Positions 42,868 through 58,242 of a stretch of 64,000 bases of DNA are shown here, piece after piece (positions within the stretch are counted from its first letter, which is position 1; each line of letters opens with the position of its first letter). The stretch is from Salpingoeca rosetta. Its lineage: Eukaryota; Protista; Choanoflagellata. The notes under the pieces are model-generated. The model ran no database searches. It saw only the letters and a list, made by a program, of their open reading frames with translations, and had not been told where the DNA came from. The stretch lies in assembly GCA_033442325.1 (NCBI GenBank), contig JAWQFM010000011.1, positions 136,116 to 200,115 of the forward strand, read 5' to 3'. A program made the position numbers and the translations under genes.

Positions 42868-44211
42868 GAGGACGCGTCGTGGAGCGGAGGGTGACGCGAC
42901 GTCCCAGAGAGCGACGAGACCAAGTGAATACATGCGCGTGGCGGGACCGCCGCTGCAGATGGTGGTCATCGATGGTGGTCGTTGATCGTGGTTGATGGTT
43001 CGAAGTAGTGTGTGAGAAGAGAGATGACGGCATACTTTGAGTCCAATCACAAACACGCGCACCGCACTGCACACACACACACACACACCGTTTGATGGGC
43101 GCGGGACTGTAGACGGTGGCAAGCATTTGCGGATTCGATGCACTGCTAACGGCGCTGGTGACGTGTCGCCCTGTTGTTGAAACGGAAGCATTCACATCAG
43201 CACATGGCAAGGGGCTCGCAATGTTGATACGACTGAAACGATCACGCCTGCAGAGAGCGTCACAAGTAATGGCACGCCTGCAGAGAGCGTCACAAGTAAT
43301 GGCACGCCTGCAGAGAGCGTCACAAGTATTGGCACGCCTGCAGAGAGCGTCACAAGTATTGGCACGCCTGCAGAGAGCGTCACAAGTATTGGCACGCCTG
43401 CAGAGAGCGTCACAAGTAATGGCACGCCTGCAGAGAGCGTCACAAGTATTGGCACGCCTGCAGAGAGCGTCACAAGTAATGGCACGCCGCTCATACACAC
43501 ACACACAATCACATACACACACGCGTTCGTGCACGGCACCTGCGAAGATGGGGGCAGCAGCAGCCATGTGTGTTGAGGAGGAGGAGAGGCCCGACACGCT
43601 GGTTGCATCGGCGCCATCGCCCTGCTCCAGCCGGCGAATCGCCGCTTCCTCGTCCAGCACAGCCGCGCACAGGCGTCCCATGCGCAGCACAAACGACTCT
43701 GGCAGTTGTAGGTGGTGGCGGCGTGCATGTGAGAGTGGACAACAGGAATGAGCAGGGAGAGGCAACGGCGCTTCGCGCGTGCAGAAACAAAACAAAGACA
43801 CACGAACACGCGCACAAAAGCACAAACACGGAACACGCACAAAAGTTCAAGCACACACACACACACGTACACACACGCACACACGCACACATACATACAC
43901 ACGCACACGCACACGCACACATACACACACGCCAGGCGCGCACCGTATTCTGAAGTTGTTGTTTCGCGTTTGAGGGCGTGTTTGCTCTCTTGTTGCTCTT
44001 CCTTTGTGAGCGGACGGCCAAACCCCTTCAAATCGCTCGGTGGATATTGGGTCCAGCACTCCTGCGTTTCCACTTCTTCCGTCTGCACGCCCTGGTCACC
44101 ACTGCACACGCGCGCGCGCACAATCGAGTTGAACGCGGCGCGTGAATGGTGGGAACAAGCGGTAAAATGAGGTGGAGAACAGCTCAACTCCGAGGAAATT
44201 ACCGCGACGGT

Positions 44212-44283
<72 letters not shown>

Positions 44284-44848
44284 CCACACACGTACAAGCA
44301 CGTGGAGGTGGTGCTTACATTTCGGGCGCGCACTGTGTAGCCGTCTGCGTGTAGCTGTCGTTGCCAAAGCTGCGGATGTAAAGCTCATACACGGATACGG
44401 GCGCGAGCTCAAATAGGTTGAACGATACAAAGTCCAGTTGCACCATGGATGACAACGCCTGGGCACACGGGTGTGTGTGTGTGTGTGTGTGTGTTGGGTG
44501 TAATCGTTGTGAGGCTCAGCAGCGATTGGGTACGTGAGAGCATCAATCCAAGGCAACATGTGCAACCCCGCCCACCTCACCAAGCATACACCCCTCCCCT
44601 CTCCTTTTCTCTCTCCACCAGCAGCGGCACCTTGAACCGTCGCATGGCCCGTGATCCGGCCACCGTGCCCTTTGCGCGCTTTGCTGCTCGGCTGAAATCC
44701 ATCTTCTTCACCCGCACATCTTCGCCCTCATAGTCGTCATTGTCGCCAGCAGCACTGCCCAGTTCAAATTTCCCGGCACCCGATGTGCCTTCCAAACCAC
44801 TCCCGTTGATGGGCCTGCCATGTTGTGTGTGCGCGTGTGCGTGCGTAC

Positions 44849-44941
<93 letters not shown>

Positions 44942-46347
44942 GTGTGTGTGTTGTGTGTGTGTGTGTTGTGTGTGTGTGTGAATGAAACACACTCTCTGCG
45001 ACCCATCCACAACCATGACCATCGTTGGTGCACGATGGCCAGGTCATTCCACCGGCACACAGCGCACACACAAGATACATGTACACACTCTCTTAAACAC
45101 TTTACCTGCGTGATCCTCGAGCGCCCTGGCGTGTTCGCAAGTTCTCTCGTCGCAACGCATCCAGCACCTGGAATGGCGATGGCGAGTGAGACATGGTGAA
45201 CAAGATGTACCGTGTGAAAGGAACGCATCATGGAACCGCACATAGCAACACAGAGCGCGCGCACACTCACACACGCACACACACTCACACTCACACACGG
45301 AACACACACAGACACACACGGAACACACACAGACACACACGGAACACACACAGACACACACATACACACACACACACACAACACAGCATATCACGCCAGA
45401 TCCTCTCCCCGAACCCCTCCCCCCCCCCTTTACTTCACCCCCCTCCTCTCCGACACCATGCTTCATCCAGCGCACCTCGACCATCTCGTCGTCGTCACCG
45501 CTAAGCCGCGGCTGCCCGGGACTGTACAGACGCGTGTTGCTGTCGTTTGGGGCAGCAGCACCATCCAGCGAGCGCAGATCAGAGTCTGAGTCCCGCACCC
45601 TGCGTGACCGGTTCACAGCATCCCACCCTTTGTCGCTGCCGCCTTGTTCGCCTTCCTCTTCTTCTTCTTCACCTTCCTCTTCATCATCCTCATCATCCTC
45701 GTCTTCAAAGTCGTCGTCGTATTCATAGTCCTCAAACTCATCATCCTCGTAGTTGTACTCATCATCACCACCATCATCACCGCCACCATCACCTTTGCCA
45801 TCACCATCTGCCCCCTGTTCGTCCTGCCCTGCTGATGTTGTGTCTCCCTGCTGCTGTGCTGCGTCCTGCTCTGCCTCCTCCAGCATTGCTCGGAGACGTG
45901 CCTGTGTTTGTGGTGGTGAAGCACGGCAGCGTGTGGATGAAGGGAGGCGACAATGCAGCAGGAAGGTGAAGATGCGTCAAAGCAAGCACGGCACTGGCCC
46001 AAATAACCACACCGGAGACCACTGCATACGCAACGCACCACAATGCGCACCACAATGCGCACCACAATGCGCACCACACACACAACGCGCCCGCACACAC
46101 ACACACACACACACAACGCGCCCGCACGCACACACACACAACGCGCCCGCACGCACACACACACACACAACGCACACGCAATACTCCACGCACCTCTCGC
46201 GCCTGTTTTGCCTGCTCTTCCCTGCTGATCGCCTGGGCGGCCTTCACCATCTCGGCAGCGCCACGACTCGACTCCATCGCCACGCGCTCATCCCGGCCAT
46301 CGCTGTCACCGCCACTGTCGCCACTATGACCCTCCTCTTCCGTATCG

Positions 46348-46378
<31 letters not shown>

Positions 46379-47210
46379 GACGCTGCGCTGTTGCTGTGTC
46401 GCCGGCGTGTGCGGAGTTGGACGGGCGACGTGCTCGCGCCTCCCGCGCATCCTCCTCCCCGTGCACAGCGGAGCTGACGCGGCTGCTGCCACCGCGCCCC
46501 TCCTTGGTGGGCCCCTCTGCCCGCAGACGCCCGGACCGGGAGCGGTGATGCCGAGACGACGAGTGCGCGCTGTCGTGTCGACTCCGTCGGTTGGCATCGT
46601 CGCGGGCATCCCGGCTGCGGTGACGCCGACGCCGTTCACCGTCGTCGCGCTCCTCGTGGTCTTCCGCCCCAGCGCGATCACGATGCCTTCTCTCCTTGTC
46701 GCGCCGTCGCCTGCGACGCTCGCTGTCGTCCTCGTCACCGCCATGACCGCCCTCACGGTCTTTCCTCCGGCGTCGTTCACGGTCCTTGTCCCTGTCTCTG
46801 TCCCGTCTGTCACCGCTGTCGCGATGCTTCGACGAGGACGACGCGGACTTGTGCTTGCGGCGTTCGCGACGACGGTCCTCATCGTCACCATCATCCGCTT
46901 CCCGATCTCCGCGATGATCGCGGGATCGTGAGGACCGCTTGTGTTCCCTGTCCCCTCTGTCCCGCCCACTGCGCTCGCGATGGCGGCGCTCCTTGTGCCT
47001 GCCGTTGCTGCGCTCCTCCTCGGCTGCCTCGCCCTCTGCGTCGCGGTGTGTGCGGCTGCGCCTGCTGCGCCGGTCCTCGTCCCCGCGCCCCTCCTCCGTC
47101 TTTCTTGAGCGGCGTGACGACGACGTTGCCTTTGACGAGCGGGAGCTCGCCTTGGCTGCCAGCGGGTTGGTGGACTTGCGCCCAGCACCTCTGCTACCCC
47201 TGCCACTCAT
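39690..47210 (-). CDS. DYNC2I1: Dynein-2 intermediate chain WDR60 (retrograde IFT); 3' end not resolved
   Basis: R/D/E-rich N-terminus from ATG 47210, then acidic YNYEDDEFEDYEYDDDF. VQLDFVSFNLFELAPVSVYELYIRSFG...GVQTEEVETQECWTQYP matches the recalled WDR60 block. WD40 blades LLVAGTQHG/VVVWDL, PAFTSDG, GLRPGASVKM and WSNARAAVFYV. Confidence 0.85.
41793..42272. other. Assembly gap (N run)
   Basis: Run of n. Confidence 1.
43243..43490. repeat. 30-bp minisatellite x8 inside a WDR60 intron
   Basis: Unit cacgcctgcagagagcgtcacaagta(a/t)tgg repeated 8 times. Confidence 0.95.
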
Positions 47211-47388
47211 CGCTGACAGTTGTGTGCGCTGTGTTTGTTGTGTGTGCCGTGTTTGTTTGGCTGCCGTCGTCCGTTGCAGCGGGGAAGTTGGCAACGGAGA
47301 TCTTTGTGCTGTCGGAGACGGCTGTGGTAGTTGTGGAAAATTTGTGGATGATTTACGGTGATTATCGTGCTGACACAGGCGAACGGAT

Positions 47389-50351
47389 ATGGCTGGTGGT
47401 GGTGGCGCAAGTGCACGGAAGGAGCTTGTGCGAGCTGTAGGCCTGTGCATGCTCTGGTACCTGGGCTCCATGATGAACAGCATCTTCAGCAAGAGGTGTG
47501 TGTGTGGGAGGGAGAAGGGAGAAGGGGGGTGTGGGCTGCGGGATGACGTTGATGTGATGATGCTGTTGCGTTTGCGTTTGCGTTTGCGTTTTTGCGTTAA
47601 TTGGTGGGTTTGTGACGATTTGTTCATGCAACATGCAGTGCAATGAAGGTGTTTCCGCGGCCCATCACCGTCACCATGGCGCAACTGTTGATGGTCAACA
47701 TCTGCTTGCCGTTTTTCCTGCCAAGCAAGGTGTGAGTGGGAGGGAGGGGGGAGGAGGCTGGGGGAGGGGATCTGTGTATGTGGACGTGTGTGTGTGTGAG
47801 TGTAAACGTGCGCGCGTGTGTGTGTGTGTGTGTGTGTGTGCGTGGTGCTCACGCGGGTTGATGCGTGCTACAATGGTGTGTCACGTGCTTTTAATTCAGA
47901 TGCCAAGGCTATCGCGAAAGGATTGGACCTCGTGGGTGATTCCACTGACGGTTCTCAAGATTGTGGTGAGCCTGTCATCACAGATCAGCATCCTCAAGGT
48001 CCCCGTCGCCTACGCTCACACAGGTACGCGCGCCTGCACACGCGATCTCTCACGCTTCACTTGGTGGGCTTGCTGCTCTCAATGCGAACACTCACAGTGG
48101 TGCTGATGTGATGTCTGCTGTTGGTGGTGTATTGCTGGTGTGCTCATTCCTTCAACGACGGGCGAACACCAGTCAAGGTAAAGCTGCACATGCGTTTGTG
48201 TGGAGTGCTCGGTCGCGTGTGTGGCCATGTGCGTGCGATTTGATGTGTGCACATGCCAGACACCACACTGGTAGCACCTTGGTTCATTCTGACAGTCGCT
48301 GTTGTTTCTGCGCTGTTCGCTTCGTTTTGGCAGGGCATGATGCCAATCTTCACGGTGTTTCTATCCAAGGTCTTCCTGAACCAGCACCACCCTCTCCTCG
48401 CATACATTAGCCTCATCCCCATCATCAGTGGTAATGCGTGTCATCATGTGTGTGCGTGGGGGGGGGGGCGTGTGTGTGTGTGCGTGGGGGGGCGGTGTGT
48501 GTGTGTGTGTGTGTGTATGTGTGTGTGTGCGTGTGTGCGTGGGTGTTTGGGTGCACTTCCCTGTCGTTTCGTATTCCTCTCATGCATGCTTGCATGCATC
48601 CATCTGCTGTCATTGCAGGCGTCGTTATTGCGTCGGTGACTGAGCTGCAGTTTGACCTGCTGGGCCTCATCAGTGCCCTCGTGGCCACGTTCACATTCGC
48701 CATCCAAAACATCTTCTCAAAGAAGGTCCGTGTTGCGTGTGTGTATGTGTGTGTGTATGTGTGTGTGTGTGTGCAGTGGAGTGTAGTGTGGTGTGGTGTA
48801 GTGTTTGGGGAGAAAGCGTGTCGTGGACACGGGAAAGGGGTGGCCGACTGTGCGTGTGTACTGCGCGCGAATACTCACGTGTCCACCATGCCACTTGCTT
48901 TCTTTTGTTTGTTTTTTTTCTTCGTAATTGTCTGCAATCACGGCAGGTGATGAAAAAGGGGGTGCATCACATCAGCATCTTGCTGCTTGTGAGTCAGAGC
49001 GCGTTTGTTGCGCTCCTGCCCTATTGGCTCTGGAACGAAGGCACAGACATCCTCTTTGGCGACACCTTTACCTCGCTCGGGGACCAGGTGAGGGCGGTGG
49101 TCGTCGGCTGTTGGCACCGTGGAGGGGTGTTTGGGGCATCTGTGCTGGCAGTCGTTGTGATCACATCACATCACGTCACGTCACGTCACGTCACGTCACG
49201 TGTGCTTGCACTCACATGCACACGCACATACATGCACACGCACATGCACACGCACATGCACATGCACACATGCAGGCGTTTGTGGTGCTCTATGAGATGG
49301 CGCTGTGTGGACTTTGCAGTGCAATTCAAACCATCGCTGCATTCACCTTTCTCTCATACGTCACGCCAGTCACTTACTCGGTGAGCTCAAGCACATGTAA
49401 CTTCATCACTTGCTCACCTGCTTGCTTGCTTGCTTGCAGGTACAACAAACCAAAGCACAATCCCGCTCGCCTTGTTACATAATTGATGACGTTCACTTGT
49501 TGTTGTGGGGCTGCAGGTTGCGAATGTTGCCAAGAGGATTGTGATTATCGTTGCGTCGATGCTGTTCTTCCAGAATCCCGCCACGCCCGCCAACATTGCC
49601 GGCATTGCCATCTCAATCGTGCGTGATGGTGGTGGTGGTGGTTGCGTTGGGAACGGATGTTTTATCACATGTGTGTCACTGAATCACGCAAGCTTGCCCA
49701 AGCTTACGCTCTCACACAAGCGTATACAAGCTCGCACCCACTCACGCACTCACACACACTCACACAAGCTTACGCACCCACACAAGCTTACGCACTCACA
49801 CAAGCTTACGCACTCACACAAGCTTACGCACTCACACAAGCTTACGCACTCACACAAGCTTGCGCACTCACACAAGCTTACGCGCCCACACAAGCTTACG
49901 CACCCACACAAGCTTACGCACCCACACAAGCTTACGCACTCACACAAGCTTACGCACCCACACAAGCTTACGCACCCACAAGCTTACGCACTCACACAAG
50001 CTTACGCACCCACACAAGCTTACGCACCCACAAGCTTACGCACTCACACAAGCTTACGCACCCACACAAGCTTACGCACCCACAAGCTTACGCACTCTCA
50101 CCCACACGCAATCACAGTGTGGGATTGCGCTGTACAACAAGTCGAAGCTGGATGAACGGCGACGAACACAAATGCAGCAGCAGCTCGCCATGGACGAGGC
50201 AAAGTGGGGCGGCGGTGGTGGTGGTGGTGGTGTCATGAACGGGTACAACGGCGCACACCACCAGCAACAGCAGCAGCCCTCGTTCTTTGCTAATCAACAC
50301 TACACCAGTGGTGGAAAGCGAAAGCCGTTTGGCCCGCTCCACGTCGTTTGA
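47389..50351 (+). CDS. SLC35E1: Triose-phosphate/nucleotide-sugar transporter family, SLC35E1-like
   Basis: [100 protein letters not shown]. Stop at 50351. Confidence 0.9.
49690..50100. repeat. 18-20-bp minisatellite (cacacaagcttacgcac[t/c]) in the last intron of the SLC35E1-like gene
   Basis: About 20 tandem near-identical units. Confidence 0.95.
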
Positions 50352-50607
50352 AGGGGATGGGTGATGGTGGAGGAGGGCGGGGGGGAACACTCGTGCGTCG
50401 TGAGTTGGTGTCACGCTAGCTTAGGTTGGTTGCAGGCGTTTTCTTTGCCTTTGCTCGTGTTATTAACATAAACGATGGATAACGGCGGCGGGAAGGGTGA
50501 GATGGTTGGATGTGGTGCGTGTATGACACACAAGAACTGTGTGGACGATTTGTGGTCATTTTCAGATGATTTTCGCACGCCTTGGAGGGAGAACAACAGA
50601 CAGAGAG

Positions 50608-53600
50608 ATGGCTTCGCAACAACAGCCAGAACAGCAGTAGTACGTGTGTATTGGCAGGGGCTCTGCTAGTAGTCTTCTGGTTGTGTGTCAGCCGTGTCCT
50701 CGTCATGAAGCCCTTGTTCCAACCCATGCCCTGCTAACCCTCCTCTTGTCTTGTGTCTTGCTATCTTTTCCACCTGTACATCCTCTTTACTTCTTTGTTT
50801 GGTGCTTGGTGTCTGTCGTGTGCTGCCATACTGCTCGTTCGTTGAGATGTGTTGGTTCTTTGGTTGGGCCAGTTCAAGTGCGTTTCTGCGTGTACTCACA
50901 CACTCACGTTGAACCTTCTGCTTGTGGATTGTGGATTGCAGTGAACTATGGTTCAAAATCCTCCTTGTTGGAGCCGTTGCTGGCAAGACCAATTTGATGG
51001 TGCGAATGATTGATGACCATTTTCAAGTAAGCTGCCAGCCTGGCCCATACGCGCAAGCACGAGAGTACTCGACCGCTTGTGTAGTAGGGTATTCTATACA
51101 ATTGAGTGATTGTGCACCACGACTCGAAGGCAATTGTGAGTTGGTCTCACTTTCCGCGACCTGTCCGCGATTCTTGACAGGGTTCCAACAAGCACACCAT
51201 GGGCGCCGATGTTGTAAGTCTTCGTTTTCCTGTCTTCAATATCTGACGCATTGCTTCGAGACACGAATAATGGACTTGCTACCATCCCTAGGTTGTTTCT
51301 TCACCTCGAATTCGTGTTCGTCCACAGGGGCTCCGACTGCTTGAGTTTCACGGCAAACAAATCTACCTGCAATTAGTACGTTCGACGATTTCTTCCTACC
51401 GATGTCCAATTGCGTGCTCTGATGCCATCTCTGTACACCCAGCCAGCGCTATAACATTCCTCACGTCCTCATACATGCAATGTTACATGTCTCACGCACT
51501 CTGCACTTCCCCTAATTTCTTCTAACATTGTGTGGACAGTGGGATACGGGTGCAAACGCTTCGTATTCGAGTCTCAAGCGAATTTATTTCAAACATGCAC
51601 GGGGTGCCTTCCTCGTCTACGACGTCACGGATCGCGTGAGGCATTCATAGTGTGCACATGTGGGCATTCGGATACTGCATTGTCTTTGTCGCACACAATG
51701 CCGGCATCGCCATTGTCACACAGGCTGATGCCAACGGTGGATCATGAATGCGTGCACAACATCCTCGCGCAGCGTCTCACTGAAGATTGGTACGTTTTGT
51801 GGTATCGTTTGATGACATGGTCACATGTCACCTCCATTTCTTGTCAACCTTTCTCCTTTCTCGCAGTCTACCTTTCGCGGAATTCTTGAAACCTTACAAG
51901 CAATACGCGCGTTTGCGGATCCCAAGTGCTGCGTGGCCCTGATTGGAAACAAGTGCGATCTCGAACACCGCCGAGAAGTGTCGTTTGAAGAAGGCCAGAG
52001 GTTCGCGATGGAGAATGGCCTCGTGTTTTTCGAAACGAGCGCGAAGACAGGCGAAAATGTGGAAAAAGCATTTCAGGAGCTCACAGCTCGCGTGGTGCAT
52101 CGGCTCGAAACAGAAGATCCACCAGCTGCGACACTGCACGACGCTTGCCGACAAGATACAACATTCAACAGGTTCAACGCTGTGTCGAGATTGCTCCACC
52201 TTGGCCAGGATCCAAACAGGCGCGATAGTCAGGTAGCTAGCAGTGCACGCATGTGCAGTTACGCACCAGACACCTGTGCCTTTTGAAGACAGTTTTAGGC
52301 ATGTACTCTGGGTGTTTCACAAAGCCACAGAATGCATGTATTCTTGTGCTTTGAGACCTGGCAGCAGACTCATTCGCTCATGACTCCCTGCGATTAATCA
52401 TTCAGGAGAGGCTTCCTCTACACATTGCGAGCGAAAGCGACGCGTCTGATGTTGTGCAGCTGTTGCTCAAGCACAGCGCCGATATCAATGCAAAGGATAA
52501 AGAGGTGTTGACCACGCTGTGCGTAGCAGATGCATGCATGTGTGTGTCTGTCTGTTCTTGTCTCTCTGTCGATACGCGTCTAATATTTCACCCGCTCGGA
52601 TTCACCACACCTCATTCCCTCGTGCTACTCCACCCCCACCAGGGATGGACGGCCCTCCACTACGCCGCGTTCAACGACCGTGCGGATGTCGTGCGCATAC
52701 TCCTGGAACAGGGCGCTGACACCACCATCAAGCACCGCTTTGTGAGTGAAGCATACAGCTGGTCGTTGCGACACCACGTGCTCTTGTTGTGTTAGTTGCT
52801 TGATGTGCGTGTTGAACTGGATCGCTGTCACCCAACCTCTTTTTTGTGTCAAATCTGCCTTCCTGTTCATGCCCCTCCCATCATCTGCTTTCGCCACACA
52901 CGCACGCACGCACACACACGCACACACACACACACACACGCACACACACACACACACACATACACACACATTCCATGCGTGATTGACAACAACAGCTGTT
53001 CGGCAAGACGGCTCTTGACCTCGCTGTCAGCCGTGGGCACAGTGATGTCATTAAGCTGCTTCGCAACCCGCAGGTGTGTGTGCTATGCTTGTGATGTATT
53101 GTTGTGTTGCTGTGTCATAAGCTCTGCTTGTTCAAACTCCATCATTCCCTCCTCCTCCTCCTCCTCCTCCTCCTACCACGCACATTCATTCTGTTGTGTG
53201 CACTTGCCCTGTTCACGCATATTTCATCTCACCTGCGCAGGCTGTGCAAGCACGACCACCATCTTCACCACAACCTGCATCCCTCCATGATGCCTGCAAG
53301 CACGGTGACACTGCGCGTGTGTCTGCACTCATTGACAAAGGCAATGTGGACGTATCCGAACAGGATACGCAGGTACGTGTTTGAATACACGGGTGTGTGT
53401 GTGTGTGTGTGTTGTCTCCATTCCCTGGTGCAGATGAACGCACCAGTGTATTCGCCAGACTTGTTGCCTTTGCTCATGCTTGTTTGCTATCTTGTTCACG
53501 TTGATCATGGCTGCTTGCATGTGCAGAGCGATACACCGCTGCATGTTGCCTGCAGGCACAATCACGCCGCTGTTGTGCAGCTGTTGCTGCAGAAAGGCGC

Positions 53601-56600
53601 CAACATCACCACAAAGAATAACAAGGTGTGGCATGTCGAACCGGACACTTTCACTGCACATGTTATGCATTCTGTGTGCATCTGCTGTGCAGTTTTGTGC
53701 GCGCGCCGCTGTATCAGCATTCGCGGGTCGTGCAGTGCATTGGTGCATGCGTGCACGAGACTTTGCACCGACACCGTGGGAATGTGTGTGTGTATGTATT
53801 TGTACTCACCCGCCAGACTGCCTTGTTGTGTCTGAATGATTGCAGGGTCAGACACCTTTGGATGTGGCAAAGGCAAGCGGTCACAAAGCCATTACATCCA
53901 TGACAGCGCTCCAACCCACAACTGCCACGACACCAAGCAGCGACAGCGACCAGCAACCACCTGAAGATAGAGATGAGAAGGGAGATGAAGAGGACCCGGC
54001 CACGGGTGAATTGGACGATGAGACGCAAGCCAGATTACAGCAGGAGAAGGTATATGCGTGAATGCGCGCGTATGTGCGTGCGTGTGCGTGGGCGCGTGAG
54101 TGTGCATGAGTGTGAATTCAATCGTGCACGCTTGCTTCGTCACTCCCTCCCTCTCTGTGCTTGCTTCCGTGCAATACGAGCTCGTACATCTCGTCTGACT
54201 TGCTCACCCAACATCACGCCACAACACACAGGCAAAGGAAGCGTACGTGGCAAACGTGAGGCGGATCATGCAGGAGATTGCCGAGCGGTGCGACCAGCAG
54301 ATGGCGGGGCGGGCAAAGCTGAACTTGGTTGGCCAGGGCCGTGCGGGGAAGACGACAACGCTCCGCTCTCTTCGGGGCTTGGGCTTCAATAAGGACGAGC
54401 ACTCGACCAAAGGCGCTGCAACGCACGACATGAATGTCACCGTGGATTCCATGGACGTTTACCAATGGAAGGTGAGCGTGAGAGGATGCGCTGTAAGTGT
54501 GGGTGCTTGCGTGTGTGTGGGTGCTTGCGTGTGTGTGTGTGATGTTCCAAAACATCATGCACGGGCTGATGTCGTGGCGGCGTTGTCACTTGGTGTTGTC
54601 ACACGATGCTGTGTGTTTGGCCTTTCACCAGAACGAAAAGCATTCCCTCCTCATCAACCACCACACTCTCAACACCACCTTCACTTCGCCTTCACCATTG
54701 CAGGCTGTGACTGGCTTTCTGTCTGAGGTTGCGCGGAGCCTGCGGGACACGGCGCTGGCGCAGGCGGGCGGTATGGACGCGGTGATGCGGATGAAGATGG
54801 AGGAAGCACATAGGCTGCGGGAGGAGCGCGTTGCACTGCAGCTCGTCAGCGAGACGGAAGCAGACGCACCGGTGGCGGCCAAAGGGGATGTGCATGGTGA
54901 TGAAGCTGGTCTTGATGCATCCGGTGAGCAGGTGCTGGCGAGCGGCAATGAACTTGGTGCACATGTCGTTGATGATGACGATGATGACGATGATGATGAT
55001 TATGATGATGACAGTGACGGTGGTGGAACTGAGACTGCTGATGCTGCTGAGCCCACATCAGCGTCATTGCCATCGCCACCCGCACTCGCAGCATCGTCTG
55101 CAGTGATGACTGCCGGTATGGGAACCGTGCCCAACATCTCAACTGAGGAGATTGAGAACGCGATCAAGGATCTGAATCTGGACACGACGTTCGGGGAGGG
55201 CAACGCCAGGGTGACGTTCAAAGTATTTGACCTGGGAGGCCAGTCCACCTTCTACATTTTCCACCCTTTCTTCCTCACCAAGTGAGTTACTGTGTGTGTG
55301 TGTATGTGTGTGTGTGTGTGTGTATGTGTGTGTGTGTGTGTCTGTCTGCGTGGGTACGTGCTGCCTGCTGCCTGCTGTCCACCGCTGCCCTCCCCACACC
55401 CTCCTCACCCCACTCACCCAACCCCATCTTCACTCTCCACACCCACACCAGGTACGCGGTGTACCTGCTGGTGTTCTCGATGGAGGACCTGCTGCACCAA
55501 GACGAGAGCAAGCGGGCAGAGACGTGGGAGTTTATGGAGCACTGGTTGTCTTCCCTCCACCTTCACGCCAAGGGCGCACCCGTCCTCATCGTTGGCACCT
55601 TCGCTGATGTGGTCAGCAAGCGTAAGCAGCACGAGAACATCTCGCGTGACATCTACAGCCGCCTGCGCCACAACCCGGCGTTCCCTGGCGTCATCCACAA
55701 CGACAAGCATGGTCTGTGGTTCTGGCCCGTCGACAACACCAAGTCCATCCGTGATCCCATGATCCAGGACCTGCGCCAGACCATCTCCTCCACAGCACTG
55801 GCGCAGGAGTACGTGAGCCAGGAGGTGGCTGTGCCCTACCTCCACCTCTACGACAAACTCCACGCCATCGCCCGCGACGAGAAGCGACCGCTGCTCACCT
55901 TTGACGACGTCGTGGATATTGCGCGCACGTGTGGGCTGCGCACACGCCAGGAGACAAAAGCCTGCCTGCAGTTCCTGCACCTGTACTCGATGGTGCTGTA
56001 CTACGACCACGTGCCAGGCATGGAAAACTATGTGATCCTGAGTCCGCAGTGGGCCGTGGACACGATGACGCGCGTCATCCGCAACTTTGACTTGCACCGT
56101 GACGAACGTGATTGGGAGGCGAGGGCCGTTGGTGCGCAGCTGTGGGACGACTTAGTTGATCGCGGCATCCTGCACCGTCGTCTGCTGGAGGTGCTGTGGA
56201 AGGATGTACGAGATGACTTGATTGAGCCCTTTCTCCAACTCATGATGGAGTATGGGTTGTGCATGGACTACACACCGCCCAGATCAGCAGAGAGCAGCGA
56301 CAGCAGCAGCGACAACTCTGTACATCATGATGATGAGCAGCAGCGCGAACACCAGCAGTATCTGGTGCCTGCCATTCTGCCGATGGTGTTGGACACGCCA
56401 TCAGACCTGCCTTCGTCCGTGACGTTGAGCGTGTGCGCAGCACAACACGTGCACAAGTACGCTGGGCACGAGCCCAACACGGCCTACATCAGCTTCCGCC
56501 TGACCCCGCGTGCTTCCGATGCCCACGTGAGTGCCGAGGACATGCAGCGAACATCATTCTTTCCCGAAGGCTTGTTTGCCGTGGTGCTGGCCCATGTCCT

Positions 56601-57025
56601 GAGATACATTCAACCCAGCACCTCATCCACGCCCATGTTGAGCCGCACCCACGTGGTTGTGTTTGTTGGCGAAGCCGAGGTTGAGCTGCAGCTTGTGCCG
56701 GCTGTAGGCGGGATCAAAATCAAGATTGCACAAGCACGTCCTCGCGCGCTGCTGCACATGCTTTGTGACATCATCGTTGAAGCCATCAGGCAGCGCTATC
56801 ATGACCTGAAGCCTTATGTCCTGCTGCCACATGACGACAAGACGCTGCTGTTCTTTGAGGACGTGCGTCGTCACCACAACAACAAGAGGGCACTTCGTGT
56901 TGGCCGCTCACAACTCTTGTCACCCGACGATCTCATCGCCAAGTACGGCCCTCTCCTGCCCGTCCTCGGCCTGCAGGAAAATTACGATGTCTTCATCAGC
57001 TACAGGTGAGTGAGTGAGTGAGTGA

Positions 57026-57061
<36 letters not shown>

Positions 57062-58242
57062 GTGTGTGTGTGTGTGTGTCTGTACCAACTGCCGTCTCTC
57101 TCTCACTTGCCCCTCACTTGACACATCCTCGCACGCACACCCCTTTCCCAAACATACCACAGGCAACGCGGCAACCGAGGTCTGGTGCTGACGTTGCACC
57201 CAAAGTTGGAGCACCACGGCTTGGTGGCCTTCGTGGATGTCAACAACTTGGAAACAGGCGTCAACTTCAAGCACGCGTGCTTGACAGCTCTTCAGCACAG
57301 CGTGGTCGCCTGCCCCGTTTTGTCTGTCGCTGCAATCCATCAGATGCGCTCGCTCGGCGACACTGACACGTGCGACAACGTGTTGCTGGAGTGGATGGCA
57401 ATGTTGGAGCTGCAGCAGCTGGCGCACAAGCACCCAGACAAGATCCGCCTCCGTCGCATCGTCCCTCTCTTTCTTGGCAGCGGCTGGCACGACAGCAACC
57501 ATACCATGAGTGTGGCGTCGGCGAGCGAGTACGATTCGCCCGAGTACATGAAGCGGCTGGCAGAGTCGCTGCCGGATGTTGTGAGTGAGAAGACTGCAGC
57601 ATCCCTCGATCAGTTCTTCACGCAGGTGCTGCACCTGCCGCCACCACAACAGCACAAGACCGTGCGCGAGACTGTGCTGTCTCTGTTTGACATTGACGGC
57701 GTCATGTCCTTTCAACGCCGAGTTGACCGAGGAGCGGATGCGGCAAGGTTTGCAGAGCAAGTGCGCCAAGTTGTCTCGGCTGGAAGCAGTAGCCGAGGTG
57801 TGCAGCGGCCCACCCAAACGTCGCAAGAAGCAACATCGTCGCTCCCTCCGTCAACCCAACCGGTATTGAGAGTGAGATATGGAGTATGCGTTATGTTTGA
57901 GCACTGCCGTTGTCTGTACTGTGAACACATACCCATGCTTTGCCTCACCTTGGCTGCCCAACCCTTCTTCGTGCATCTTTGTTTCGTTGTCCTCACAACT
58001 CTTGCCTGCAGGCACCTGCTGACGTGTCCACACTGTCTGCCGATCTCCGTGAGTGGCTGCAATCCGCTGACCTCCTGGCCAAAGTTGGGCCCGCCCTCAT
58101 TGGTGTTGGGGTGGAGAAAATGGACGACCTTGGCCGAGCAATGCGGTTGATGGGGGATGACTTCAAGGCAGAAATGAAGGCTGCTGGTGCCAAGCCGTTT
58201 CACGTTGCCTGTCTTCTTGAAGCCTTTGAAGCGGAGCAATGA
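50608..58242 (+). CDS. Roco-family protein: degenerate Rab-like GTPase + ankyrin repeats + Roc + COR + TIR + SAM-like (about 1,550 aa, 17 exons)
   Basis: Phase-compatible GT-AG exons: 50608-50639, 50942-51026, 51181-51213, 51328-51375, 51540-51635, 51867-52232, 52406-52504, 52643-52741, 52996-53073, 53241-53372, 53527-53625, 53846-54049, 54232-54471, 54704-55281, 55452-57005, 57163-57862, 58012-58242. Rab: FKILLVG, LIGNKCDL, FFETSAKTGENV. ANK: GWTALHYAA, TPLHVAC. Roc: KLNLVGQGRAGKTT, FDLGGQSTFYIFHPFFLT, PVLIVGTFAD. COR: VILSPQW, YLVPAILP, FPEGLF. TIR: YDVFISYR, DNVLLEW. Confidence 0.85.

Follow-up and report, generated by a model that had tools for sequence, protein, structure and literature searches.

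Locus and gene structure

We analyzed a 64-kb stretch of the genome of the choanoflagellate Salpingoeca rosetta (assembly GCA_033442325.1, contig JAWQFM010000011.1, positions 136,116 to 200,115), hereafter the window, and positions below are those of this whole stretch unless another locus is named. The gene in question, hereafter the window copy, lies on the + strand at 50608-58242 and encodes a Roco protein of ~1,600 residues, in which a Rab-type domain precedes ankyrin (ANK) repeats, a Roc-COR unit, and a TIR domain. Exons 1 to 6 of this gene are a real, expressed Rab-family G domain that forms the N-terminal head of the ANK-Roc-COR-TIR protein. An earlier note on this DNA had described the head as a degenerate domain of the Rab2/4/14 type, and possibly an integrated decoy. 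The genome searched for relatives comprised 55.4 Mb in 68 contigs, with GT..AG introns; database and profile searches were run exon by exon, and the joined exons were used for alignments, trees, and rates of nonsynonymous (dN) and synonymous (dS) substitution.

The Ras-family resemblance of the head is not due to chance, because the Pfam Ras profile (PF00071) matched the open reading frame of exon 6 with an E value of 3.2e-19 and exon 5 with an E value of 2e-5. The PDB matches of exon 6 were all Rabs. Within exon 6 (51867-52228, + strand), the Rab domain runs straight into an ankyrin repeat, and because the Rab C-half and the first repeat (from ~52131) share this one exon, the Rab-ANK fusion is certain and independent of any splice calls. 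Downstream of the Rab domain, Pfam matches were to Ank/Ank_2, Roc, COR-A, COR-B, and, weakly, TIR_2. Together with the single-exon fusion, these matches bear out the proposal that a degenerate Rab-family domain has been fused to an ANK-Roc-COR-TIR protein. The C-terminal prenylation cysteine motif was likewise absent, as had been claimed, with the head continuing into the ankyrin repeat inside an exon and with no CaaX, CC, or CXC at the C-terminus of the protein (58242).

Six + strand exons across 50608-52228, delimited by joints in RNA, make up the head and the first ankyrin repeat. Exon 1 (50608-50639) supplies the start codon (MAS..) at the 5' end of the gene, and its joint to exon 2 (50639>50942) was seen in RNA reads and in one contig. 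Exon 2 (50942-51026) encodes beta1, the P-loop, and alpha1; exon 3 (51181-51213, with joints 51026>51181 and 51213>51328) encodes switch I; exon 4 (51328-51375) encodes the interswitch beta2-beta3 (..GKQIYLQL); and exon 5 (51540-51635) encodes a degenerate switch II and alpha2, followed by beta4, with RNA joints bounding exons 2, 4, and 5 as well. Exon 6, which contains the Rab C-half with its G4 and G5 motifs, is joined onward by 52228>52402.

The motifs of the head depart from those of ordinary Rabs to different degrees. The G1 motif is the 7-residue GAVAGKT (50970-50990), with the Lys and Thr kept, and is one residue short of GxxxxGK[ST]; in a MAFFT alignment, the P-loops of the window copy and of a paralog, C6, carried a one-residue gap relative to every other Rab aligned. 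Switch I reads HTMGADV (51193-51213) and retains its Mg-binding Thr and its Gly. Switch II, at 51540-51590, reads WDTGANASYSSLKRIYF and starts WDTGANA, such that the G3 motif is DTGAN, in which the Asp remains but Gly and Ala have traded places (DTGA vs DTAG), the Gln has become Asn, and DxxGQ is absent. G4 (GNKCD, 51945-51959) and G5 (ETSAK, 52032-52046) are intact. All guanine- and Mg-binding residues are present in the window copy, except for the switch II Gly and Gln. Rabs have conserved signature stretches of their own, the RabF motifs, in both switches and in the interswitch. When the alignment was read by eye for such stretches, beta4 LVYDVT was seen to be retained along with part of the interswitch, and the switch II/alpha2 stretches were lost in the window copy and largely kept in C6. 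The spliced translation thus upholds what the earlier note had read at G1 (one residue missing, as the MAFFT gap also shows), at G3 (loss of the catalytic Gln and of the DxxG Gly, with the Asp kept), and, within exon 6, at G4 and G5 (both intact); the altered switch I was confirmed as sequence, although, with its Thr and Gly retained, the change is only mild.

Transcript data for 50352-55700 came from two stranded raw-read RNA-seq runs and from contigs of two other studies, which together gave thirteen splice joints, all GT..AG. The mate orientation of the reads fits a + strand RNA for the window copy. No differing letters or indels relative to the RNA were reported in exons 1 to 5, nor in exon 6 before 52088, and the five introns of exons 1 to 6 were correctly removed in RNA, with an open frame and intact splice sites.

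A sequence or splicing error was considered as a source of the odd motifs and was ruled out by the RNA joints, by the lack of differing letters or indels, and by the position of the P-loop, which cannot be a splice artifact because GAVAGKT lies inside a single exon (exon 2).

The remainder of the gene follows a Roco plan. Exons 7-12 (52402-52502, 52641-52741, 52996-53068, 53236-53368, 53523-53623, and 53844-54047, + strand) encode ankyrin repeats and an acidic linker, as delimited by RNA joints and Pfam Ank/Ank_2 matches. Exons 13-14 (54230-54469 and 54702-55281, + strand) encode Roc, with a long acidic insert between its P-loop and its switch II, entered and linked by joints 54047>54230 and 54469>54702, and with an inferred donor at 55281. 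The long exon at 55450-57006 (+ strand) holds the rest of Roc, both COR-A (1.4e-18) and COR-B (8e-4), and, at its end, the first strand of the TIR domain. Roc is thus followed directly by COR, the order that defines a Roco protein. The Pfam Roc match on exon 13 was weak (5e-4, below the cut-off), and it lies upstream of COR on the same strand; the Roc motifs themselves are canonical, with a GQGRAGKT P-loop and a DLGGQ switch II. The TIR domain and tail (57185-58242, + strand) were read from the frames, with a Pfam TIR_2 match of 7e-4, below the cut-off, and with the protein ending at 58242.

Several other features were observed around the gene. Upstream on the + strand, a gene at ~48100-50351, whose end lies near 50351, looks from its hydrophobic exons like a multi-pass membrane sugar/phosphate transporter, and a tandem repeat at ~49700-50100 consists of KLTHSH-type units in one frame. 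On the minus strand, a 683-residue open frame at 45801-47852 has Arg-Ser/Arg-Asp/Arg-Glu runs and a likeness to splicing-type proteins with arginine-serine (RS) domains. Across 43000-58000, (CA)n/(GT)n microsatellites occupy most introns of the window copy and its neighbors, and reads were cut at those of 52891-52976, 53139-53184, and 53383-53421.

Paralogs in the genome

The window copy belongs to a large family in which a Rab head is rare. Its COR exon has paralogs at no fewer than 36 loci, with identities of 53-91%, and an upstream Ras-family match (Roc itself aside) occurred at only three of these: the window copy, C6, and C5. Exon 6, when searched against the genome, matched the copies on two other contigs, C6 (67% identical) and C5 (43% identical). 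C6 has the same Rab-ANK-Roc-COR-TIR layout as the window copy, with 59% identity over the Rab domain, and the two share the start peptide MAS[Q/K]QQ. In the C5 gene (~804292-805550 of its contig, minus strand), a short basic linker connects the Rab head with Roc, and ankyrin repeats are absent. The counterpart of exon 4 has the same length, 48 bases, in both C6 and C5. By COR identity, the nearest paralog is C8 (91%), a gene with ankyrin-like repeats but no Rab exons.

At 55185-55700, RNA depth rose to 10-50 times that of neighboring exons, and variant letters and loose ends numbered in the dozens. This stretch is unusable for reading the expression of the window copy, because reads of many paralogs pile up there, and its high, variant-rich depth fits a multi-copy family.

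Motifs of the three Rab heads form a graded set. The P-loop is short in the window copy (G-AVA-GKT) and C6 (G-RDA-GKT) and canonical in C5 (GDTQVGKS). Among the 29 Ras-family loci of the genome from which a P-loop was recovered, 27 were canonical, and only the window copy and C6 were short. The switch I Thr is kept in all three heads. Switch II reads DTGANA in the window copy, DTNGQE in C6, where the conserved Rab sequence of switch II/alpha2 is also mostly intact, and DSGGQE in C5. G4 reads NKCD in the window copy and C6 and MKSD in C5, and ETSAK is found at G5 in all three. As judged from these sequences, the P-loop deletion is old and predates the split of the window copy and C6, because both share it, while only the window copy has lost the Gly and Gln of switch II, along with the conserved switch II/alpha2 sequence.

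Subfamily placement and relatives elsewhere

Placement within the Rab family drew on database matches and on trees. The best PDB matches of the Rab C-half were Rab14 (67.7 bits), Rab4B (62.1), and Rab2A (62.0), with Rab11A at ~51-52 bits, and the ranking for C6 was similar, with Rab14 first. A word search returned free Rabs only, at no more than 68% identity, and those with names were Rab-2A (three) or a Rab2/RabB-family small GTPase; the identity of the window-copy head to a Rab2-like protein was 42%. Trees were built from 36 Ras-family loci of the genome, stitched with a local hidden Markov model, and long branches were then removed. The window copy and C6 were sisters with a support of 99. 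After long-branch removal, this pair was the maximum likelihood sister of a clade containing the genome's Rab2 (L021) and Rab14 (L046), with a support of 0, and these same two genes were the nearest tree rows to the window copy by path. The C5 head was nearest to the genome's Rab1 gene (47%). Monophyly of the three Rab heads was not recovered in the best tree, but the approximately unbiased test did not reject it (p value of 0.29). On the PDB and named matches, the Rab2/4/14 type is the best candidate, while the phylogeny against the organism's own Rabs gave that position a support of 0.

Another locus, L037 (C26:706642-707133), contains a complete, intron-free Rab domain in a 920-residue open frame and is sister to the genome's Rab1 gene with a support of 98. 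It may encode another large Rab fusion protein.

Searches elsewhere for the same architecture returned other kinds of proteins. An exon-6 search of 1.84 billion representatives found only ordinary or multi-Rab predictions, where representatives may be Rab-less paralogs. Among nine long matches from that search, none had the Rab, ANK, and Roc layout. The word search gave free Rabs only and no Rab fusion, and long proteins are invisible to such a search. In the literature, nothing specific was found on choanoflagellate Roco proteins with a Rab head or a TIR domain.

Gene conversion and selection

Comparison of the window copy with C6 revealed two layers of divergence. Over ~3.3 kb (~52800-56100), a tract that takes in ankyrin exons, Roc, and COR-A together with introns, the nucleotide sequence matches that of C6 at 92-100% identity, whereas both flanks are 46-86% identical in the same nucleotide alignment. 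Because the near-identity extends through introns, this tract is a product of recent gene conversion or recombination, and it is on either side of the converted center, in the Rab head among other parts, that the true age of the pair can be read. In addition, the COR exon of the window copy was observed to be 91% identical to that of C8, while the ~52800-56100 tract is near-identical to C6. On these sequence comparisons, gene conversion has turned the family into a mosaic.

Rates (Nei-Gojobori, window copy against C6, one paralog pair) followed the same pattern. In the Rab N-half (exons 2-5), dN was 0.47 and dS ~2.3, which is saturated, for a dN/dS of ~0.2; in the Rab C-half, dN was 0.14, dS 0.32, and dN/dS 0.44, and the whole Rab domain gave 0.36. 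Ankyrin exons had a dN of 0.04 and a dS of 0.09 (dN/dS 0.45), Roc exons 13-14 a dN of 0.011-0.012 and a dS of 0.02-0.04 (0.26-0.6), and the COR-B and TIR flank a dN of 0.36 and a dS of 1.1 (0.33). Divergence within the N-half was even, as the aligned portions of exon 2 (46% identity), exon 4 (58%), and exon 5 (47%) show. The earlier note had proposed that the switch surfaces of the head evolve fast, a claim that is not borne out, given the saturated dS, the dN/dS of ~0.2, and the even divergence of the N-half, and given an equally diverged COR-B/TIR flank. Rather, these ratios, rough as they are, indicate that purifying selection acts on the Rab head as strongly as on the remainder of the gene.

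A faster evolution of the Rab head than of the rest of the gene was also considered and ruled out, as the identity gradient along the gene reflects the conversion tract and the COR-B/TIR flank is equally diverged. With a Rab2/4/14 outgroup, conserved N-half sites carried 12 lineage-specific changes in the window copy and 4 in C6 (chi-square 4.0), a modest excess and the sole sign of acceleration in the window copy; in the C-half, the same test gave 2 and 3, respectively.

Interpretation of the Rab head

The reading we prefer, to which we give about an even chance, is that the head of the window copy is a constrained, GTPase-dead, Rab-like interaction module that occupies the N-terminal sensor or regulatory slot of the receptor. 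Such a head would no longer cycle as a GTPase and would instead be a pseudoGTPase-type module, possibly nucleotide-bound and locked in one state, that is presumably kept as a fixed protein-interaction surface. PseudoGTPases such as the Rnd and RhoH types bind GTP without hydrolyzing it. In C8, the N-terminal slot is taken by ankyrin-like repeats, and a Rab is lacking there. From this slot, the head would set where and/or when the Roc-COR switch and the TIR output act, and two routes can be envisaged: it could dock on partners of Rab2/4/14-like Rabs, or it could pack against its own ANK/Roc-COR portion, analogous to the binding of Rabs to the N-terminal repeats of LRRK2. The head may still bind nucleotide, because the binding residues are present except for the switch II Gly and because C6 long kept its other motifs alongside a short P-loop. 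Indeed, at a dS of >2 since the split, C6 still has its switch I Thr along with DTNGQE, NKCD, and SAK, which suggests that a short P-loop is compatible with function.

Several observations weigh against this reading. The Rab exons are thinly covered by RNA, to a depth of no more than ~5 reads in each raw-read run. The dN/dS values come from one paralog pair with saturated dS and are rough, and the conservation of G4 and G5 is weaker evidence for selection than it appears, because conversion from C6 may have renewed the low-dS region (0.32) in which they lie. The 12 versus 4 changes in the N-half fit relaxed constraint or adaptation as well. Further, nucleotide binding by a 7-residue P-loop is a prediction from sequence, and the partner, the localization, and any immune role of the head are all hypothetical.

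Relaxed constraint would be expected if the head were a slowly decaying relic that was functional in an ancestor (and maybe still is in C6 and C5), is now dispensable, and drifts while being carried along by a selected ANK-Roc-COR-TIR protein. That the switch II Gly, the Gln, and the conserved switch II/alpha2 sequence were lost only in the window copy is what such drift would produce, as is the relative-rate excess of 12 versus 4, and the intact C-half may stem from conversion from C6 (dS 0.32 versus >2). We nevertheless consider decay unlikely, given that no stops, frameshifts, or lost splice sites have arisen since a split of saturated dS, that five introns are still removed in RNA, that the N-half dN of 0.47 is far below dS, and that the P-loop Lys and Thr, the switch I Thr, and the switch II Asp are all kept. 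The same constraint would also suit an atypical but active GTPase, in which the short P-loop and the Asn allow binding and hydrolysis proceeds through a residue supplied in trans by a GTPase-activating protein or by dimerization, as in Rap and dimerization-activated G proteins. Here, the presence of the guanine- and Mg-binding residues, apart from the switch II Gly and Gln, is as expected, and the C6 sister shows a full DxxGQ beside an equally short P-loop. The backbone NH of the switch II Gly contacts the gamma-phosphate, however, and in Ras the G60A substitution blocks the switch; the Gly/Ala swap in the window copy removes exactly this Gly, and the conserved Rab switch II/alpha2 sequence is gone as well, such that we regard continued GTPase activity as quite unlikely.

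The integrated-decoy idea holds that the head mimics a phagosomal Rab that bacterial effectors modify or bind, and that tampering releases Roc-COR and turns the TIR domain on. The genomic setting is congenial to it. Specifically, the head sits in the N-terminal slot (filled by ankyrin-like repeats in C8) of a large, mosaic, receptor-like family; the three Rab-headed members have differing best matches (Rab2/4/14-like for the window copy and C6, Rab1 for C5); catalytic residues have been lost while the fold was kept under selection, as bait domains often show; and the window copy carries an excess of lineage-specific changes. Yet no positive or switch-focused diversification was found, as the ratios of ~0.2-0.45 and the even N-half divergence equal those of the TIR flank. 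Known Rab-modifying effectors recognize the switch II sequence, so the part lost from the window copy is the very part they recognize, and mimicry of a canonical Rab would be weakened. In addition, the main text of a 2025 survey of plant NLR (nucleotide-binding leucine-rich repeat) integrated domains is without Ras, Rab, or GTPase. Taken together, we find a decoy role decidedly unlikely. Its most specific form is, to our minds, very unlikely: that a bacterivorous relative of animals uses its Rab-headed Roco-TIR genes to trap effectors, with built-in copies of phagosomal or secretory Rabs (Rab2/14-like in the window copy and C6, Rab1-nearest in C5), that tampering with these by bacterial effectors would be read by Roc-COR and converted into TIR-made cyclic ADP-ribose (cADPR), and that the window copy is the most bait-specialized, non-cycling member.

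Whatever the role of the head, the finding as it stands amounts to a pseudoGTPase-like variant that is well documented rather than to proof of an immune mechanism. Its interest lies in where it occurs. Roco proteins and Rabs are linked in animals, where LRRK2 is recruited by Rabs and phosphorylates Rabs, and TIR enzymes are ancient immune outputs. Here, a unicellular close relative of animals has a Rab-type domain welded to an ANK-Roc-COR-TIR protein, and a single genome holds three versions of it: one with canonical G1-G3 (C5), one with a short P-loop and the catalytic Gln (C6), and one with a short P-loop and a dead switch II (the window copy). These heads are a ready-made allelic series with which to study the control of a Roco switch by a Rab surface and to ask whether nucleotide can still be held by a P-loop of 7 residues. 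If the bait idea were true, the integrated-decoy principle would extend beyond plant NLRs, on a Roco instead of an NLR switch.

Comparison with known systems

Compared with Rab2/4/14 Rabs, the window-copy head shares the G-domain signature, the intact NKxD and SAK motifs, and the best C-half matches, but it differs in its 7-residue P-loop and in lacking the DxxGQ Gly and Gln, the Rab switch II/alpha2 sequence, and the C-terminal Cys motif. Further, those Rabs are free proteins, whereas this one is the head of a ~1,600-residue protein. Its likeness to pseudoGTPases (Rnd, RhoH), as far as sequence can indicate, is that of a G fold substituted at the catalytic Gln and at P-loop and switch positions and apparently kept by selection as an interaction module; the change in P-loop length is unusual, and the domain lies beside a second, canonical G domain in a Roco protein. 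Within the genome, C6 resembles the window copy in layout, short P-loop, Rab-domain identity (59%), and sister placement (support 99), and differs in keeping DTNGQE and most of switch II/alpha2. C5 stands further apart, with canonical G1-G3, MKSD at G4, no ankyrin repeats, and a Rab1-nearest head.

As in LRRK2-type Roco proteins, ankyrin repeats precede Roc-COR in the window copy, and a Rab-type surface adjoins the repeats. GTP-bound Rabs recruit LRRK2 by binding its N-terminus, and the three domain-topology groups of Roco proteins that have been reviewed include none with a Rab head or a TIR domain (PMC6337361). In the window copy, unlike in LRRK2-type proteins, the Rab is covalent and degenerate, kinase and WD40 domains are absent, and the output is a TIR domain. 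A cADPR-producing TIR has been described from Salpingoeca rosetta itself, in a preprint whose figure abbreviations include LRR (leucine-rich repeat), Roc, and COR (10.64898/2026.04.20.719644). Relative to plant NLRs with integrated decoys (PMC9528084, PMC8294853), the switch of the window copy is Roc-COR and not NB-ARC, the analysis turned up no effector, no paired helper, and no adaptive signature, and an immune role for the family is hypothetical; what the two systems share is a degenerate domain fused to a switch-plus-TIR, receptor-like protein that belongs to a large, recombining family.

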